DNA from: Botryllus schlosseri
Lineage: Eukaryota
Direction: 5' to 3'
Length of the DNA stretch: 64,000 nucleotides
NCBI GenBank assembly: GCA_051294905.1
Contig: CM119375.1
Location: forward strand, 9,734,001 to 9,798,000
Shown here one piece after another: positions 52,734-64,000 of this stretch. Each line of letters begins with the position of its first letter. Position 1 is the first letter of the stretch. The notes beneath the pieces were generated by a model. That model saw only the letters and a program-made list of their open reading frames with translations. It ran no database searches and was not told the DNA's origin. Made by a program: the position numbers and the translations under genes.

Positions 52734-53290
52734 GTAAGTGGTTTTCCGGATCTGTTCGAGTTGTTCGTATCGCGCGGCTTGTGATGTGCCGCGTAGGGCA
52801 ATGATGCGCGATTATATTTCATGATTGAAGCCTAAATTCGTGGCCGTGTCATTCAATTTCAAAATCGTAATGGTCCCAGAGCGGAGTCATCTTTCTATTG
52901 AGGTATCGTGATGCAATATTATATCGCTTCGGGGCTGTTACGGAATTCCGACATTCGGATGTCTGTTATCGGCGGAAGTTTTTCTTGAACATTCAAATCC
53001 TGTTATGCAAGCTGCTAAGCCAGTGGTTCACAACCTTCTTCGTCTCGTGCCCCCTGTTGTACCCTTCGATAGAACTCAATACGATCGGTTCCTAGGCTTT
53101 TATTAACATAAAAGTAAGCTAGTGTATCTGAATACAACATGGCAATAATACAGAGTTAACGTAGGTACAACTAACAGAAGCGACGCCACACCCAACTGGT
53201 ACAAATGAAATGAATAGTCCCGACGTGAAGGTAATCAGGAGCAATCAGTATAAACACCCACTAGTGGTCAAAAGGGACTGATACACCACA

Positions 53291-53301
53291 ATCTCCCCCA
53301 C
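53291..53301 (-). promoter_or_regulatory. Polypurine tract of the Gypsy element
   Basis: Minus strand GTGGGGGAGAT immediately precedes the TG of the 3' LTR. Confidence 0.8.
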
Positions 53302-53318: not shown

Positions 53319-56300
53319 TTATAAAGAGGATTGTCCATATCGTTCAGGCGCGCGTTTGATTCTAGTTGATCTTCTCAAGGGCGGAGGATCAGCGACAACT
53401 TCTTGCAAAGTTTCTGAAGAATCTTGTTTGTTGCCAACGTCAACCGTAGGTTCAACCAGAAACGAATCGTCGGCCACTGCACGGTCCGGTTCGGCAGCCC
53501 CATCATCGACTGGGTAGGGCTCAGTAGTAGGCGGATAAGGTGCGAGGTCCTTGACTGAGACGGTCGATTCCACTCCAGATGGATGCCGGATCAAGGCATA
53601 TTTGGAGTTAGCTTCGAGCAAATCGACTTCGATTCCGAGCGGATCACTTTTACTTCTCCTTGCGAAGTTCCTCAGCAACACGGAGCCTCCTTGGAGTATC
53701 CAATCTGGAACCGATTCCCCCATCATACTTCTCCTACTGAAATTGAAAAATCTGTCGTGCGGACACGAATTAGTAGTAGTACACAGAAGCGAACGGATAG
53801 AGTGAAGGGCATCAGGCAACACAGCTTCCCATGAACTTTCAGGCAATTTTCGTGAGGCTAAGAGCATTCTTACTGATCTCCAGAGCGTTTGATTCAAACG
53901 CTCACATTGAGAGTTTCCAGTGGGATGGTACGGAGTAGTTTTGCTCGTTGCTATGCCTTTACGGGTAAGAAACGTCGTTACTTCCTTCGATAAGAACGAG
54001 TTTGAACGATCGCTGTGAACATATTCGGGCAGACCGAACAAGGAAAACAAATCAGTGAGACAATTAACAACGGTAGCTGATGTCATATCTCGGCATGGAT
54101 ACGCAAATGGAAATCTGCTGTATTCGTCAATAATTACGAGCAGATACTTTCGAGGTCCTTCAACAGGGCCTTTGAAATCAATACTTATTCTCTCCCACGG
54201 TCTAGTCGATTTAATGAGACGGTGATGGACATTGGATTTATAGAATCGCGGTTTGATTTCGGAGCATATTCTGCAGTTAGCGCAGATCTTTCGGACTTCA
54301 TCTACAGAGAATGGCAAGTTTTTCGCTCTAATAAAATGGTTCAACCGTCGTACTCCGGGATGAGCAAGAGCTTCGTGCACCTGATGGAGAGACAAGCCAG
54401 AATTTGGCAACGAGCAGCAGACACGAGAAAATGTATCAGGAACAACATTCTCAGTACCCGGACGATGAATTATTTCATACTTGAAGGCGCTCAATTCGAG
54501 TTTCCACACCGACAACTTAGCATTTTTGATTTTACTAGCGTGAGTTTTGCTGAATATGAACGACAATGCTTTTTGATCGGTAACGAGGCGGAACTTATTG
54601 CGGTGAAGCAAGTATCCCCATTTTCGTATGGCCTCAATAATAGCGAGAGCCTCTTTTTCAACAATATTGTATTTTGACTCGCATTTGGAAAGAGTATGCG
54701 ACATAAACGCTACAGGTCTGCCTCTTTGACTTAGTATGGCCGCGATAGCCACGTCCGAAGCATCACAGGCAACCTCGAAAGGTTCGTCGTCATATATACA
54801 ACTTAGGCAAGCACCTATAAGGCTATTTTTCAACGATTTGATAGCCTGGAGTCCATCGGTTTTCAACGGAAATTCATTGTTTCGAGTCAATGGTTTCATT
54901 TTTTCCGAAAACGAAGGTATCCATTTCGAATAATAGGCAAACATACCCAAGCAGCGCTTTAAACTTTTTGCATTGTTAGGGATGGGCATATCCATCAAAG
55001 GTTTCAAATGGCAAGGATCAGGCTGAATTTTGTTATGGGAAATAAGGTACCCCAGGAGCGATAACTTTTCAACTGAGAACGCACATTTCTTTTCATTCAG
55101 AGTCAGCCCGTCAGCCTTGGCTGAAGTCATAAAACGTTCCAACCTCTTATCGTGTTCTTTTCTATTTTTGCCATAAATAGTAACATTGTCCAGGTAAGCA
55201 ATAGTACCTTGCAGGTTATGATTTCGGATGAAATTGTCTATGAATCGCTGGAAAGCTGCGACGCCGTTTGTTATCCCAAAAGGCAATCGACGAAACTGGT
55301 ATAAATTACCGTCAGCTTCGAAAGCTGTTAAAGGACGGTCTGAAGGGCAAAGAGGCACCTGATGATACGCGGATTTCAGATCGATGGTGCTATATACCGT
55401 TCCTTTAGCGACTTCATTAACAATATGCTCGATTCTAGGGAGCGGATACGCGTCCAGGGGCGTATATCTATTAATAGTTCGAGAATAGTCGATAACTAAC
55501 CGCTTTTTATGGCGTTCATCTTTCGTCACCAGAACCTGAGCCCGCCACGGAGAGACGGACTTTTCTATCACATCTTCTTGCAGTAATCTTGACACCTCTT
55601 CTTTGATGAATTGGGCGTCGTCGGTGCAATAATTTCTTGATTTCACAGCGATGGGATCGACATTTCTATCAACGAAGTGGAATATCTTTGGCGTCTCTGT
55701 GATCTTAGCGGCAGCGACGGAACAGTGAGAATCATCGATGATCAAGTCGCTTCGAGGCCCGTTGAACTTGAAAATGACGTTCTTGTGAGTTTTCAGGAAC
55801 TCCAATCCTAAGATCACATCCGCGCACAAGTTGTTTACGACTCCGAAACGTGTTTCGCTGTATTTATGATCCTGTATTGTGAATGGCGAAGTAACGTGCC
55901 CCAATACTTTAGAGGTGGAGTCCTTCGATGCCAGAGTAATAGTGGATTCCGGTCCGTGCAGAGGGAGTGCAAGCGAATTAGCAAACGATCGTCTCATAAA
56001 GCATTCGTAGGCCCCCGAGTCGACCAGCGCCTCTATAGTCAATCCTGCTATATTGATGATGATAGCCGAGTATCTGAGTGATTTCGGTACTCCAATCAAC
56101 AGGGAAGCGAGGTCCGCCACTTCGGCGGAATTAAACGTTACCGCACCAGTTCCACCGGCGGCTAGAGAAGCCAAATGAGAGGCTTCATCAGAATCATACG
56201 CTGGCGCAGCGATCTTCCTATTTTGAGTGCCACTTTTGCATACCTTACCGAAATGGCCTTTATATCCACATTTATAGCAATCGGCGTTTTTCGCGGGACA

Positions 56301-57065
56301 GACCTTGCGCAGAGGGTAATGTTGACTGCCGCAATATTGGCACTTCTTGTATGCTTTCGTGACTAATGCAACTTCGCCGGTCCCCTCCGGCGTTATTTTG
56401 ACTTGATCGCTATTAGTCGTCTGTTCAGATCCCACAGCACTCACGGCGACAGGGACGGGCATCGATATGGGCACGTAAGAAGACGAAAATTGCTGAGCTC
56501 GCTCGAGAGATTCGGCTATCTGAACCGCTTTGTCCAATGTCATATCATCGTGCTCCAATAATCTAAGACGAATATTAGGCGAACGTAAGCCAGCAATTAA
56601 GGCGTCGCGAACTGCTTCCTTTTGATGCTCGTCGGAATTTACAGCAGCGAACATGCAATCTTTAGCGAGAGTTAGCAATTTTAGCGAAAAATCCGTGACG
56701 CTTTCTCCTTGATCCTGACGAGACGTTGCCAAGAGGTGTCTGGAGTAGATCACGTTATTCTTTTTCTTGTAGAGCTTGCATAGCGCCTCAAGAGCGGATT
56801 CATACGTAGCGAAGTGCTCTACAAGAGCGAACACATCCGGCGATATATATCCGTATAGAATAGCCAATTTGTCAATAGTCACTTCAGCTGGAGGGTCAGA
56901 AGAGGATCGATTGGGAGCCGTTGAGTTTGAAGCGGAGGCCTGCGCGGCAACTAAGAATTTCCCCAACATCTTCTCCCAATGATTGAATATCTTCTGCGAG
57001 TCAGCCGAGCTTGGCATCACTTCCAAAACTGGCACACGTATGTACTTTTCTTGAGAGAACGCCAT
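53319..57065 (-). CDS. Gag-Pol polyprotein, single ORF (1248 aa from the ATG at 57065)
   Basis: Two zinc knuckles (CQYCGSQH...C; CYKCGYKGHFGKVC), protease LVDSGA, RT (DLKSAYHQ, LPFG, YLDN), RNase H (CDASD, EKEALAI, TDQKAL), integrase (HHCC, IDFKGP, HSDR, GNSQCER). PR-RT-RH-IN order. No chromodomain seen. Confidence 0.95.
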   Translation of the reverse strand: MAFSQEKYIRVPVLEVMPSSADSQKIFNHWEKMLGKFLVAAQASASNSTAPNRSSSDPPAEVTIDKLAILYGYISPDVFALVEHFATYESALEALCKLYKKKNNVIYSRHLLATSRQDQGESVTDFSLKLLTLAKDCMFAAVNSDEHQKEAVRDALIAGLRSPNIRLRLLEHDDMTLDKAVQIAESLERAQQFSSSYVPISMPVPVAVSAVGSEQTTNSDQVKITPEGTGEVALVTKAYKKCQYCGSQHYPLRKVCPAKNADCYKCGYKGHFGKVCKSGTQNRKIAAPAYDSDEASHLASLAAGGTGAVTFNSAEVADLASLLIGVPKSLRYSAIIINIAGLTIEALVDSGAYECFMRRSFANSLALPLHGPESTITLASKDSTSKVLGHVTSPFTIQDHKYSETRFGVVNNLCADVILGLEFLKTHKNVIFKFNGPRSDLIIDDSHCSVAAAKITETPKIFHFVDRNVDPIAVKSRNYCTDDAQFIKEEVSRLLQEDVIEKSVSPWRAQVLVTKDERHKKRLVIDYSRTINRYTPLDAYPLPRIEHIVNEVAKGTVYSTIDLKSAYHQVPLCPSDRPLTAFEADGNLYQFRRLPFGITNGVAAFQRFIDNFIRNHNLQGTIAYLDNVTIYGKNRKEHDKRLERFMTSAKADGLTLNEKKCAFSVEKLSLLGYLISHNKIQPDPCHLKPLMDMPIPNNAKSLKRCLGMFAYYSKWIPSFSEKMKPLTRNNEFPLKTDGLQAIKSLKNSLIGACLSCIYDDEPFEVACDASDVAIAAILSQRGRPVAFMSHTLSKCESKYNIVEKEALAIIEAIRKWGYLLHRNKFRLVTDQKALSFIFSKTHASKIKNAKLSVWKLELSAFKYEIIHRPGTENVVPDTFSRVCCSLPNSGLSLHQVHEALAHPGVRRLNHFIRAKNLPFSVDEVRKICANCRICSEIKPRFYKSNVHHRLIKSTRPWERISIDFKGPVEGPRKYLLVIIDEYSRFPFAYPCRDMTSATVVNCLTDLFSLFGLPEYVHSDRSNSFLSKEVTTFLTRKGIATSKTTPYHPTGNSQCERLNQTLWRSVRMLLASRKLPESSWEAVLPDALHSIRSLLCTTTNSCPHDRFFNFSRRSMMGESVPDWILQGGSVLLRNFARRSKSDPLGIEVDLLEANSKYALIRHPSGVESTVSVKDLAPYPPTTEPYPVDDGAAEPDRAVADDSFLVEPTVDVGNKQDSSETLQEVVADPPPLRRSTRIKRAPERYGQSSL

Positions 57066-57078
57066 GTTGAGATGACCA

Positions 57079-57093
57079 TTTATGTTAATAAAA
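57079..57093 (-). promoter_or_regulatory. Non-tRNA primer-binding site, complementary to the LTR
   Basis: Sense TTTTATTAACATAAA begins 1 nt after the 5' LTR and is the perfect complement of LTR sense TTTATGTTAATAAAA (57138-57152). Confidence 0.7.
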
Positions 57094-57209
57094 TTGTTGT
57101 ACCCTTCGATAGAACTCAATACGATCGGTTCCTAGGCTTTTATTAACATAAAAGTAAGCTAGTGTATCTGAATACAACATGGCAATAATACAGAGTTAAC
57201 GTAGGTACA

Positions 57210-60200
57210 GGGCAATTCCCTGCACAGACAACCGATGTTCCCACCACTACCTCTCCAAATCTCCTGAAATTTGGTACACGCACAGATGAGCTAATTCCAA
57301 ACAGGATGAACTTTATTTTATGAAAATTGGACTTGGGGGTCAAAAGTGACGTCACTTTGAAAATAGACAATTTTCTGCTCATTTCGGGTCTGCACTTTCA
57401 GGTTTTATCAATGCAATATTCAAGAAGGTGTAGCTAGATGTTAGACGACAGTTGAGATACGGCACTTGGATTTATCTGAAGCTTGTCTGATCGTCTATAT
57501 TTCCAAGTAAAATTCATTGCCCTGTAGGTTAGGGCTAAAGGTTAAATTGAGGGGGAATTAAGTCAATGGTCTAAAATCAGTCAGGCGTTACACGATTTAG
57601 ACTGCGGATTGCTCAAAAACATATTAAAATATTTTGGAAAATAGGATCTTAAATGAAAGTTTGCTTCAAGGAGACTTCGTTCATAGCTGTTTGATTTTGG
57701 ATATTAGACTGTAAATTGATGAAATTGCAGTTTCAAGAGCACACTTCATTTGCACATGGAAATGCAGTAGTAGTAGGGTGCGTTCGGACATCGAGTCTGG
57801 GGTGTGTGTAGACATCATGTCTGGGATGTGTTCCGACATCATTTCTTGGGTGTGTTCGGACTGTGTTGCCATTGAAACGTAATGTCTGGGGTGAGTTCGG
57901 ACTGTTTTGCCCCTCGGACATCGTGTCTGGGGTGGGTTCGGACAGTTTTGCAACTCGGACATCGGGCCGAGGGTGTGTTCGAGATGTGTTGCCATTCGGA
58001 CATCGTGTCTAGGGCGTGTTCGGACATCATGTCAGGGGTGTGTTAGGACTGTGTTGCCACTCGGGCATCGTGTCTGGGCGGGGGGTTGGGGGGGTTCGGA
58101 CATCATGCCTGGAGTGTGTTAGGATTGTGTTGTCAATCGGACATGGTGTCTGGGATATGTTTGTGCTGCGCCAGACATGCCTCAGACCTGATATCTGCGC
58201 ACTATTTTTATCCAGACGTGCTCCGGAGCTGATGCATGCGCACTAAATACCTTCAGGCATTGTCCGAAACGGATATCTGGACACAGACATGCGTCAGACG
58301 TGATGCCCGCGTCCTAAACGACGCGTTTTTGCTGATATCTGCGATAGCTAGGTATATCCACAGTAGTGGTAGCTGAGTATATCCAAATTTACAGTAGTGA
58401 TAGCTGAGTACATCCACAGCTATCACTACTGTGGATATACTCAGCTATCACTGATATCACTACTGTGGATGTGGATATACTCAGCTATCACTGCTGTAGA
58501 TATACCCAGCAATCGCAGATATCAGCAAAAACCGCAAATATAGAGGTCATATATTGGTCAAATGTCGTTTAGGACGCGGGTATCACGTCTGACGCATGTA
58601 TGTGTCCCTTAAGCCCGCAGATATCAGATTCGGAATATGCCTGGGGGTATTTGGTGCGCAGGTAAGAGCTACGACGCATGTCCACTGTCCAGATTTAAAT
58701 AGTGGCAGATATCAGGTCTGAGGCATGTTTGGCGCATCACAAACATATCCCAGACACGATGTCTGAGTAACAACACAGTCCGGACACACCACAGGCATGA
58801 TGTCCGAACACCTTCCAGACACGATGTCCTATATAGTCATCATCATCATTGGTTTATTAGCAATTTTATCAGTTCAATACACCACAAACATGCGATACAA
58901 TGAAAAGACAGGAAGATGTCGAAGTGACAAGGAGTAGTCTATGGAATCTGACACCCACCTTGGCCTAGGCGATGTAAAGAGGAGGCATGCACACTGGATG
59001 AAAGTAAAGAAGATATTATAGAAGAAGAATGCGACAAGAAATAGGGCGGCATGTCATGGGAAGCGAGATCGATAGGTCAGTCGTGGTCCGGTAATCTTGA
59101 GGATGGACTGTATTTATTTAGTAGTAATTGCTTGTATTTCGACTTGAATGTGGACATGCTCGTCGACTGTCGGATGGCCGGCGGGATACTGTTCCACACA
59201 TCAGGTCCGGCATATTTGATGGAGCGATGATCTTTTCGGTCGATCATATGATATTTGGACGACGTGGACGCGCGTGTATTGTACTTGTGCGCTTTTGATT
59301 CGGAGGTGAAGAAGTCATTGAAATATTCGGGGCAACGACCGCAGTGAAACTGATACATAAACTTGGCGATTTCTAGTTTCCGCATATCTTCTATGTTTAG
59401 GACGCCGAATCTCTTCAGCAGCGACTTATTGGATGGGCAGCCAGGCCCCTTTGGGGCCCTAGCTATGATTCGGAGCACTTTATGCTGTAGTTTCTGCAGT
59501 GGCTTCAGTGCAGTTTTACTGGCAGCCCCCCAACAGAGGATGCCATAATGTAACTTCGATTGGATTAAGGATTTAAAGAGTATCAGAAGAACCCATGCTG
59601 GCATGAAGCGCCCAAGGCTGTAGAACAGGCCGCACTTCGGTGATAATTTAGTTTCTAGGGACTGAATATGACTCTTCCAGGACATGTTCGAGTCCAGTAA
59701 AACTCCGAGATATTTGGCATTATCTGTGTTGGAAACGGGATGACCAGCGATATTAACGGTTAGGTTATTTTTTGAATTAACTGTCAGCAATTGCGATTTG
59801 GAGGCGTTTATGCAAAGGTTGTTCTGGGCCGTCCACTCATGGACTTTGGGCATTTGGTCACCAGTCAGGGCATCTAGCTCTGCCGTCGAAGATGCGGAAG
59901 AGAGGAGGTGAGTATCATCAGCGAATAGTGTGGTGTTCAATGAGGAGGTTTCAAAAATGTCGTTGACATATAAGGTGAAAAGGACCGGTCCAAGTACTGA
60001 GCCCTGGGGCACACCACAGGTCACCGGGTGAGGAGAGGACAAGGTGTCTGAGATCGCAACCATTTGTTGGCGTCCAGTGAGGTAACTTTTCATGAGCTCA
60101 AGTGACAGCACAATCCGAATTCCCCCCAGATACGATGTCCGCGTTGCGAAACAGTCCGAACACACCCAAGACATAATATCTGAACACCCCCAAGACACGA

Positions 60201-61727
60201 TATCCGAGTTGCAAAACAATCCGAACACCTCAGACCTGATATCTGCGCACTATTTTTATCCGGACATGCTCCGGAGCTGATACCTGTGTGCCAAATACCC
60301 CCAGGCATGGTCCGAACCGGATATCTGTGCACTTAACAGACATAGACATGCGTCGGACGTGATGCCCGCGTCCTAAACGACGTTTGACCTATGACCTCTA
60401 TATTTGCGGTTTTTGTTGATATCTGCGATAGCTGAGTATATCCACTGTAGCGATAGCTGAGTATTTCCACATCCGCAGTAGTGATATCTGTGATAGTTGA
60501 GGTGAGTATATCCAGAGTAGTGATAGCTGTGGATATACTCAGCTATCACTACTGTGAATATACCCAGCTCTCGCAGATACAAGCAAAAACCGCAAATAAA
60601 GAGGTCATATATAGGTCACGCGTCGTTTAGTACGCGGGTATCACGTCTGACGTATGTCTGTGTCCACTAAGTGAGCAGATATCCGTTTCGGACAATGCCT
60701 GAAGGTATTTAGTACGCAGGCATCAGCTCCGGAGTATGTCTGGATAAGAATTGTGTGCAGATATCAGGTCTGAGGCATATCTGGCGCAGCACAAAAATAT
60801 CCAGACACGATGTCCAATTGACAACACAATCCTAACACACTCCAGGCATGATGTCCGAACCCCCTCCCCCCCAGACACGATGCCCGAGTAGCAACACACC
60901 CCTGACATGATGTCCGAACACGCCCTAGACACGATGTCCGAATGGCAACACATTCCGAACACACCCTCGGCCCGATGTCAGAGTTGCAAAACTGTCCGAA
61001 CCCACCCCAGACACGATGTCCGAGGGGCAAAACAGTCCGAACTCACCCCAGACACTACGTTTCAATGGCAACACAGTCCGAACACACCCAAGACATGATG
61101 TCGGAACACATCCCAGACATGATGTCCACACACACCCCAGACTCGATGTCCGAACGCACCCTACTACTACTGCATTTCCATGTGCAAATGAAGTGTGCTC
61201 TTGAAACTGCAATTTCATCAATTTACAGTCTAATATCCAAAATCAAACAGCTATGAACGAAGTCTCCTTGAAGCAAACTTTCATTTAAGATCCTATTTTC
61301 CAAAATATTTTAATATGTTTTTGAGCAATCCGCAGTCTAAATCGTGTAACGCCTGACTGATTTTAGACCATTGACCAAATTCCCCCTCAATTTAACCTTT
61401 GGCCCTAACCTACAGGGCAATAAATTTTACTTGGAAATATAGACGATCAGACAAGCTTCAGATAAATCCAAGTACCGTATCTCAACTGTCGTCTAACATC
61501 TAGCTACACCTTCTTGAATATTGCATTGATAAAACCTGAAAGTGCAGACCCGAAATGAGCAGAAAATTGTCAATTTTCAAAGTGACGTAACTTTTGACCC
61601 CCAAGTCCAATTTTCATAAAATAAAGTTCATCCTGTTTGGAATTAGCTCATCTGTGCGTGTACCAAATTTCAGGAGATTTGGAGAGGTAGTGGTGGGAAC
61701 ATCGGTTGTCTGTGCAGGGAATTGCCC
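57210..61727. mobile_element. 4.5-kb foldback non-autonomous DNA transposon (Sola2-like termini)
   Basis: GGGCAATTCCC...GGGAATTGCCC termini. 4-bp TSD taca (57206-57209, 61728-61731). About 1.1-kb inverted arms with CGGACATC(A/G)TGTC tandem arrays and two internal palindromic units. No transposase. Confidence 0.88.
58837..60108 (-). mobile_element. 5'-truncated CR1/L2/Crack-group LINE (RT C-terminal half, 3' UTR, (ATG)n tail)
   Basis: Open frame to 59077 with GVPQGSVLGPVLF, LFADDT, KYLGVLLD and GPDVWNSIP. (CAT)n at 58837-58849. The N-terminal 40 aa of the tracked ORF come from flanking repeat. Confidence 0.92.
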
Positions 61728-64000
61728 TACAACTAACAGAAGCGACGCCACACCCAACTGGTACAAATGAAATGAATAGTCCCGACGTGAAGGTAATCAG
61801 GAGCAATCAGTATAAACACCCACTAGTGGTCAAAAGGGACTGATACACCACACCCCCCTTGGCCGATATTTGAGCTAAATCCCCCCCTGTGAAAAAGTTG
61901 CCTGTGACTAAAAAAGGTGCTTTTTAACGCGCAACCATTTGTTGACTGAGCAATTAATGGCCAAACATATTCAGATATGTCCGAACTATGGCGAATGCGC
62001 TCTAAACTTTGGTAAAGTACAGTCAAATTTGACCTGTTTTTGACCGGTCGGGTAGCCGCTGACGAAATATAAATCACCAAGTCCGATTGCTATGGACTTG
62101 AGTTGAATCGATGAATTTGGTACGGTTTGCTTTTCATGTTGGCTCATATGTTGGTTTAAACAGTTAAACAATTTCACTAGCGGCCTTGTGCTGAATTCGG
62201 CTTGACGTTTTCCTGCCTAGTAGCAATTTGGTCGAGAGGCTGTCGCGGACCCAACGAAATCGTGTCGTGAGCCTCACTTTATCAGGGGGTGTAATATTTA
62301 AGGAAGGCATTTAAACATACACCTAGCTTGAAATCCGCCAAAGAAACATTGTAAAGAACTAATTTCTACTAAACAGTTCTATACCATAAAATTCTGAAAA
62401 CCTTGCGAACCCAGTGTATCTTCCAATACAATGCCAAAGCCAGATTTCCCCTAAAAAAAATTCAGCCAGATTCCCCCCTAAAAATTTAAAAATTCCCCCC
62501 AATGGGGGCATTCCCCCCCCCGGTTGCGAACCACTGTGCTAAGCAATGCGAGCTTGTATCTCCGCGGTTAGCGTCTGTTTCTGCCTGTCTGCTCCATACA
62601 TTGTTACGCCTCATATTGTTACCTCATCATCGTTGTGACGTCACTTTTTATCATGGAAATTATCATGGCCCAGTGCAATGCGCATATCGCATATCATTCC
62701 TATAGCAAACCTTGAAAAATATTCATTAAAAAGGCAGAAGTGGCTTGATAACATAGTTTTGCCAAGCACTCAAATAGGTTAGGTCGGCTTTCACGACTTA
62801 TTCAAGTGGTTGTGTTTCAGACTCTTTCCACTGGAACACTCTTTAAGCAAAACTATCAACTTTTGAACCTTGAAGTTTTGAAATGTGTAGGTAGAAAGTA
62901 GCCGATGGATTAGTATACAATACTTCGACTCGCAATCGAGCAGATATTTACGGCGTTACAGGTACTTCTCATTGAGTAGCTACACTGACAATTTAAACAT
63001 CTCTGCTAAAAAACCGGCCGGCGAGTTTGCAGCTATATTTGTGTGTGAGCGATTTTTAAACCAGCTTGTGCCGCTCTATTGTCACTCGTCATTAAAGTAA
63101 GCCGTAAGGAACCGACAGATTGAAAGCAGCCGCCTTAGGTAGCTCTTTCCGACGCTGTAATCCGGCGTCTCCTCCGATTAACCGGCGTGGACCAAATCGC
63201 CATCTGTCGCCGTCGGAGTAATCTAATAAAGATCGTCGTAGATCCGTAGCAGTCTCGATCGCTGTGTAAATCTATCAGAACTGTGTTGTATATAAGGTAA
63301 TTACGTAAGGCGTAATGATCCAGGTGGTTTTCAGTGGTTTCAATTTGCACGTGTTTGTGTTGGTGCGTGCGTTAAATTAATAGCCCCGGACTGGCTTTGT
63401 AGTTCTATTTGCGTAGGTCCGTTTAGTTTGTGTCAGTTGTAGAAAGAACTCAAATACCTAATGCTGACTCATGATATTGATGTGATGCTCAAATCTTCAA
63501 TCATGATTAATTAATTACTCATTATATAATTCTCATTACGCATGGAAATGTTTTTAGTAGGGACTAGTTGAAAAATGAATCTTCCAGAAAAATATCAATT
63601 GCTACGGCGGCGTCATAATATTAATGTCATGCTCCAAGTTCACTCCTCGTGATAACGCTAGTCATTGCTCGACATTATGTGATCACGATCTGCTGCATGG
63701 TTCTCAAGCTTTTAAGCTTACGTAGCGGTAAAATTTCAAAACAGATTCTTCGTACCGATGAACCTTTAACAATCCATATTAACCCAATATATATCTACCC
63801 CGAATGCATGCAAGTTCAATGTGATGAGATCTTCGCTGCTGCCTTTTTGAAGTTATATTTTGAAGTTTCTATTGAGGTTTCTGTAAGGGGAAGTCCTGTT
63901 AAAAACCACGGACAAGATTTTGATTGTTCGGTTGCTTCCAAGCGATCTGCGACTTTGTTGGTTGCTAGCCAAATGCCGCTACATTGCACTGTCAAATTCG

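Follow-up and report, generated by a model that had tools for sequence, protein, structure and literature searches.

To our knowledge, self-primed reverse transcription has experimental proof only in the case of the fission yeast element Tf1. In Tf1, the first 11 nt of mRNA pair with its primer-binding site (PBS), RNase H cutting between nucleotides 11 and 12 (PMC7175516, PMC4600332); the title of Lin and Levin 1998, cited in PMC4600332, indicates that Tf1 also requires a stem beside the primer duplex that resembles the U5 inverted repeat (U5-IR). Self-priming has in addition been predicted from sequence for the Tf1/sushi group in vertebrates, the Tcn1 clade in fungi and non-seed plants and the copia TAR lineage (Houba, Osr-1) (PMC6317226, PMC2864245), and, from complementarity between the long terminal repeat (LTR) and the PBS without a tRNA match, for 12% of surveyed plant elements (PMC6317226). 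Here we describe a Ty3/Gypsy retrotransposon on the minus strand of a 64-kb stretch of Botryllus schlosseri DNA (assembly GCA_051294905.1, contig CM119375.1, positions 9,734,001 to 9,798,000; hereafter the window, with coordinates counted from its first letter), for which the same kind of prediction can be made, namely from LTR-PBS complementarity without a tRNA match. Like Tf1 and Tf2 of Schizosaccharomyces pombe and Tj1 of S. japonicus, it has no tRNA PBS and carries an LTR segment complementary to the sequence that follows the LTR. The reading we favor, with a probability of about 0.73, is that this intact element would prime minus-strand DNA synthesis with its own RNA and not with a tRNA. 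The whole clade to which it belongs probably primes its own reverse transcription in the same Tf1-like manner, as a non-chromoviral group of metazoan elements.

The plus-strand sequence at 57079–57093 is TTTATGTTAATAAAA, and its exact reverse complement lies at 57138–57152, with 44 nt between the two, so that the perfect 15-bp inverted repeat with a 44-nt loop reported in an earlier note on this sequence is confirmed to the base. Read on the element strand, the 5' LTR ends in ACA at 57095 and is followed by a single unpaired A at 57094 and then by the PBS arm, TTTTATTAACATAAA (57093 to 57079). The LTR arm, which is the proposed self-primer, reads TTTATGTTAATAAAA from 57152 to 57138, lies 43 nt before the LTR end and contains AATAAA, as had also been noted before. 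A 15-mer match places a second copy of this arm within the 3' LTR, on the minus strand at 53098–53112. Only three occurrences of the 15-mer are present in the 64-kb window: one on the plus strand, past the LTR, and one in each LTR on the minus strand. The predicted fold of the minus-strand RNA from 57060 to 57157 includes the helix, with a z-score of −2.8.

A chance match in A/T-rich sequence could in principle give rise to such a repeat: the arms are A or T at 13 of 15 positions, and in the copy from Trichuris suis (L040) the perfect pairing extends over only 9 bp before a mismatch is reached. Dinucleotide shuffles of the window, in contrast, led to an expectation of 0.00 matches for the 15-mer, and 0 of 2000 shuffles of the LTR tail yielded a complement of equal length at the PBS position, as was the case in 10 of the 12 families, this one counted, to which the test was applied. 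This genome contains the 5' junction in at least 23 copies, at 87–100% identity and with both arms retained, and the pairing recurs in independent assemblies from other phyla. We therefore regard coincidence, or an artefact of assembly, as a practically negligible explanation. One locus of the element's own family (L012, identical with L062) has three extra bases (AAT/ATA) between the LTR end and the PBS, reading ACA-ATA-ATTTTATT; these could be the footprint of imprecise initiation or of imprecise primer removal.

Conservation was studied in 20 families, comprising this element, 11 families from other hosts or samples and 8 further families in this genome. The outside families come from metagenome or read-archive contigs (L031, L032, L033, L034, L036, L037 and L038) and from four named hosts, Loxostege (L035), Mytilus edulis (L039), Trichuris suis (L040) and Macrosiphum (L041); the LTR ends of the relatives were fixed by direct repeats and target duplications. 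LTR-PBS complementarity was found in 20/20 families, with compensatory changes between the arms, and the conservation in relatives on which the earlier note had staked its proposal is thus borne out. In this element and the 11 outside families, perfect pairing extends over 9–17 nt, with the PBS arm at the LTR end. The position of the PBS arm is equal in the 20 families: it begins 1 nt past the LTR end in 19 of them, where the unpaired spacer A is conserved, and 2 nt past it in Mytilus, where the spacer is GT. The Trichuris element, a copy whose LTRs are 97.9% identical, combines 9 bp, one mismatch and 6 bp. Counted from the loop side, positions 1–15 are paired in 10–12 of 12 families, and positions 16–18 in 3–5 of 12, which is the level expected by chance. 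This sharp drop fits an RNA 5' end at that point, with which it is compatible rather than a proof of it.

As can be seen from an alignment of 11 sequences (alignment A1), 95.7% of the cells of the helix are paired, compared with 34–54% when the partner columns are slid. Nine of the 15 pairs show changes on both sides, and the covariation score was reached by 0 of 500 shuffles; RNAalifold, run unguided, predicts exactly this 15-bp helix. The covariation extends to the polyadenylation signal, since variants of the poly(A) hexamer in the LTR arm are matched in the PBS (AATAAA with TTTATT, ATTAAA with TTTAAT and AGTAAA with TTTACT). The LTR arm ends in such a hexamer in 18/20 families, counting Mytilus, where the arm ends in ATAAA and AATAAA overlaps the arm end. 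Immediately after the arm, G or A followed by CC is found in 18/20 families, the exceptions being L037 (GCT) and L038 (ACT), and Mytilus being wholly different here. The resulting AAA-G/A-CC junction is conserved and would mark the expected RNase H cut site. Because the spacer is A in 19/20 families and the arm is followed by G or A, the proposed cut site always coincides with an A-G or A-A mismatch that closes the duplex. Self-priming, which the earlier note had put forward as a candidate, is therefore supported by a conserved, covarying helix, an argument made at the level of sequence.

Further families of the same kind were found within this genome. A search with a moth relative returned about 2,500 candidate loci, and a Pfam RT_RNaseH search of the genome gave at least 150 places. 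The 30 best of the approximately 2,500 loci (L042–L071) include many with open frames of 1,200–1,270 amino acids and with a pair of 100% identical LTRs, an indication that such elements are still active or were so until recently. They define 8 additional families, at least 9 in total, each with its own arm and with 12–16 bp of perfect pairing at the same position; the motif in L052, L054 and L059 was established by inspection, and L053 and L060 are outside the resolved set of 30. Two of these families depart from the usual arrangement. Family C (L045, L046, L049 and L054) and family H (L068) retain both the helix and the GCC after the arm, the arms ending in CTTAAA/GCC and CATTTAA/GCC, respectively (a slash marks the arm end), whereas a separate AATAAA lies unpaired in the loop. 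The distance from arm to LTR end is 46–69 nt in these families versus 21–53 nt in the others. In L047 (family B), both LTRs, which are 100% identical, carry AATAAG in place of AATAAA in the arm and the PBS is unchanged; the affected pair turns into a G-U wobble and the poly(A) hexamer is weakened.

These families bear on a different interpretation, in which the helix is a regulatory or structural hairpin of the 5' leader, acting in poly(A)-signal masking, packaging or dimerisation, and the primer is some other RNA. In retroviruses, U5-IR and U5-leader stems and the poly(A) hairpin of HIV-1 (human immunodeficiency virus 1) are cases in which R/U5 sequence pairs locally around the primer site or hides the AAUAAA. 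The position of the poly(A) hexamer at the end of the LTR arm in most families would suit such a role, and as the complementary arm occurs only downstream of the 5' LTR, masking would be specific to the 5' end. Retroviral stems, however, flank a separate tRNA PBS, whereas in this element the PBS position is taken by the stem's own 3' strand. It fills the sole position available to a primer, 1 nt past the LTR, and leaves no space for another PBS; in L031 the gag ATG already follows at +16. Moreover, masking needs neither perfect pairing over 12–17 bp nor an exact register with the LTR end, and because families C and H carry AATAAA in the loop, the helix is not a simple mask of the poly(A) signal. 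We consider a hairpin with such a leader function unlikely, yet it is the alternative to self-priming to which we give the most weight.

Priming by a host tRNA, a tRNA half or another small RNA, either at the helix or at a TGG located 16 nt downstream of the LTR, has the precedent that tRNA primers are usual in most Gypsy elements, and mosquito elements of the Mag lineage use a PBS for tRNA-Ser or tRNA-Leu (PMC3286476), for which we find no counterpart here. The TGG lies at 57078–57076 and is part of the local sequence TGGTCATC at 57078–57071. The claim that no TGG-type PBS follows the LTR therefore holds in the sense that no TGG-type site is conserved across the relatives, but not to the letter, since this copy does contain one. 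In a subfamily with shared LTR changes (L013, L014, L017 and L020), TGATAAT stands where this copy has TGGTCAT, and because this TGG, the only one nearby, is absent from the later-amplified subfamily, it is dispensable. As a candidate tRNA PBS the TGG was rejected, given its distance of 16 nt from the LTR and its loss on amplification.

With regard to the helix itself, the site starts with TTT(T)A, so that its primer must end in UAAA(A)-3', which excludes a tRNA ending in CCA. A conserved host RNA is excluded because no two families share the variable half of the site, which in each of them corresponds to the LTR of the family itself, as judged from covariation rather than from a full screen of host tRNAs. 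Thus no tRNA match to the site, which had been named earlier as a result that would tell against self-priming, is indicated. No Rfam match was obtained within 56900–57300, and no tRNA gene was found in the 64-kb window. Altogether, we judge priming by a tRNA or another host RNA very improbable, and clearly more so than a leader hairpin.

In reverse transcription, the 3' edge of the 5' LTR is set by the point at which the minus-strand primer sits. Because the primer site defines this edge, the 3' arm of the helix is the PBS by position. Given that a helix is present, that it covaries and is in exact register with the LTR end, and that a tRNA-type site is missing, we propose that self-priming would take place as follows. 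A segment of about 15 nt of the LTR transcript, mostly ending in the poly(A) hexamer and followed by G/A-CC, would fold back and pair with the 15 nt that start one base past the 5' LTR. The RNase H of the element would then cleave the duplex at its loop-side end, AAA(A)/GCC (here and below the slash marks the proposed cut), which in this copy would correspond to a cut between 57138 and 57137 (AAAA/GCC). The freed 3'-OH would be extended through U5 to give a strong-stop DNA of about 44 nt, and this DNA would be transferred to a short remnant of R at the 3' end of the RNA, namely the bases that separate the cut from the poly(A) site. Finally, plus-strand strong-stop synthesis would copy the primer back into the PBS, by which the arms would stay complementary.

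Several points weigh against self-priming by this route. Cleavage and the identity of the primer are deduced from sequence, as is the placing of the transcript start at, or close to, the arm's 5' edge. Over an uninterrupted copy of the element (L001:1281-2180), RNA depth was no higher than 8 in four RNA runs, one of which had no reads placed. TATA-like and initiator-like motifs are present at inconsistent distances from the arm across families, and in L032 and L037 the strongest TATA lies approximately 85–120 nt upstream of it; in these two families the arm would then be internal to R, and additional trimming on the 5' side of the primer would be needed. If the arm includes AAUAAA, the first strand transfer would have to make do with an R of only about 10–25 nt. 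In addition, the arms are A/T-rich, and a second stem described below has no significant folding z-score. The flank of the uninterrupted copy (L001:1281-1379) is an unrelated repeat, with a depth of 200–800 in RNA-seq and single-cell runs, beside which the Gypsy element itself is almost silent.

Compared to Tf1, the duplex found here is longer (11–17 bp, mostly 14–16), and most arms have a poly(A) hexamer at their end, with G/A-CC after it. Unlike Tf1, the element resides in an animal, lacks a chromodomain in its integrase and encodes a Gag with two Cys-His knuckles. Furthermore, the primer segment of Tf1 is the 5' end of the mRNA, a correspondence that is no more than deduced for the present element. 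A stem adjoining the primer duplex is possibly common to both systems. When the loop was folded alone, a stem starting at the first base past the arm was obtained in 9/12 families, with varying pairs of the form RCCUW/WAGGU (the slash here separating the two strands), and this second stem may correspond to the U5-IR-like stem of Tf1. In this copy (57101–57137, minus strand) it is a possible but weak pairing of GCCU at 57137–57134 with GGGU at 57104–57101.

The earlier note had also described nested pairing outside the main helix. The pairing of 57061–57069 with 57175–57183 (9 bp) does exist in this copy, but it has no counterpart in other families, where only chance matches of 0–6 nt are seen beyond the main helix. 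Outer pairings would also lie upstream of the transcription start site that the note itself had predicted, and they were dropped as a conserved feature.

The element as a whole is young and intact. Its two 236-nt LTRs are 100% identical, as shown by the direct repeats D8 and D9, and it is flanked by identical 5-nt target-site duplications, GGGGG, at 53050–53054 on the 3' side and at 61853–61857 on the 5' side (both given for the minus strand, the latter read directly from the sequence). The 3' LTR (TGTGG...ACAACA) occupies 53055–53290 on the minus strand, where D8 and D9 match both halves of the 5' LTR at 100%. One nucleotide before it lies the polypurine tract GGGGGAGA (53292–53299, minus strand), likewise read from the sequence; a G-rich tract is also seen at this position in relatives. 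A single gag-pol open reading frame (ORF) of 1248 amino acids plus stop spans 53319–57065 on the minus strand, with its ATG at 57065, 29 nt away from the LTR, and its stop at 53319–53321, as defined by the ORF list, the translation and Pfam domains. Along this ORF, the Pfam domains follow the order protease, reverse transcriptase, RNase H and integrase, which is that of Ty3/Gypsy elements (Metaviridae); the TG...CA ends of the LTRs, the target duplication and the polypurine tract before the 3' LTR are likewise those of Ty3/Gypsy, and Ty3 Gag-Pol is the best solved relative of the polyprotein.

The 5' LTR is split by a foldback-type insertion of 4.5 kb (57210–61727, not assigned to a strand), which is foreign to the Gypsy element and was delimited by the inverted repeat I1, the overlap of D8 and D9 and its junctions. 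The 3' half of the LTR, the putative end of U3 with R and U5, lies at 57095–57209 on the minus strand and is 100% identical to 53055–53169 (D9); the 5' half, with the start of U3 (TGTGGTG...), lies at 61728–61852 on the same strand and is 100% identical to 53166–53290 (D8). The insertion has 843-nt terminal inverted repeats that are 98% complementary, internal 41-nt tandem repeats and ends reading GGGCAATTCC..., and it is bordered by a target duplication of 4 bp (TACA when read on the plus strand).

Gag contains two Cys-His knuckles, one CX2CX3HX6C array and one canonical CX2CX4HX4C array, and the 1248-amino-acid ORF has no chromodomain match in Pfam (E ≤ 0.01), as the translation and the domain search agree and as had been stated in the earlier note. 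The sushi and Tcn1 elements are chromoviruses and TAR is a Ty1/copia lineage, whereas among 120 listed relatives of this element there were 0 Pfam matches to a chromodomain. The chromodomain at the C-terminus of integrase that is characteristic of Tf1/sushi was thus not found, and the element may belong to a lineage separate from Tf1/sushi, going by the missing domain rather than by a tree. More than 1,100 strong relatives of the polyprotein, about 1,200 amino acids in length, were identified in hosts that include Trichuris, Trichinella, Ciona, an aphid, two Lepidoptera and Mytilus, and a Ciona protein is among the best named matches.

Several features are shared with the Mag lineage (the A, B and C clades, SURL and Jule) and with the Cigr-1 clade. 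As in these groups, the element is compact and has a single gag-pol ORF. The nucleocapsid contains two CCHC arrays, as described for Mag (PMC2577118), the LTR 3' end, YAYAACA, resembles motifs of the Mag A and C clades (PMC3601003), which we take as a lead only, and the spread of the C clade is pan-metazoan (PMC6238403), as is that of the relatives found here. The knuckles, the single ORF and the LTR-end motif would suggest a place in the Mag lineage or the Cigr-1 clade, an assignment made by such features and not from a tree.

In a literature search, in whose reach older subscription papers were not included, self-priming of Gypsy elements was reported only for the Tf1/sushi and Tcn1 chromoviruses, and within the same reach no description of self-priming was found for the present clade. 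For other groups, self-priming is predicted in a plant copia lineage, and Skipper of Dictyostelium is discussed as a variant that lacks an explanation (PMC6317226, PMC5006619). A broader reading of our data is that a very large, pan-metazoan clade of Gypsy elements without chromodomains has abandoned tRNA primers and self-primes from a segment of about 15 nt that usually doubles as the polyadenylation signal. Its span would take in nematodes, molluscs, insects, probably tunicates, and this genome with its approximately 2,500 candidate loci. To this reading, taken at its full breadth, we give even odds.

If it is true, self-priming would be common in animals rather than a curiosity of fungi and fish, and would occur outside the chromoviruses; its origin would be either independent of Tf1/sushi or more ancient than has been thought. 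R would have shrunk to a few dozen bases, and a poly(A) hexamer that serves as the 3' end of the primer would imply an unusually short R and set a limit on minimal LTR size. Intact elements, thousands of them, would be wrongly annotated as having no PBS by pipelines in which a tRNA PBS is required. With about 20 primer/PBS pairs that co-vary, the clade also provides a set of natural variants in which features recognized by RNase H, namely the invariant unpaired A at +1 and the G/A-CC past the cut, would be displayed.

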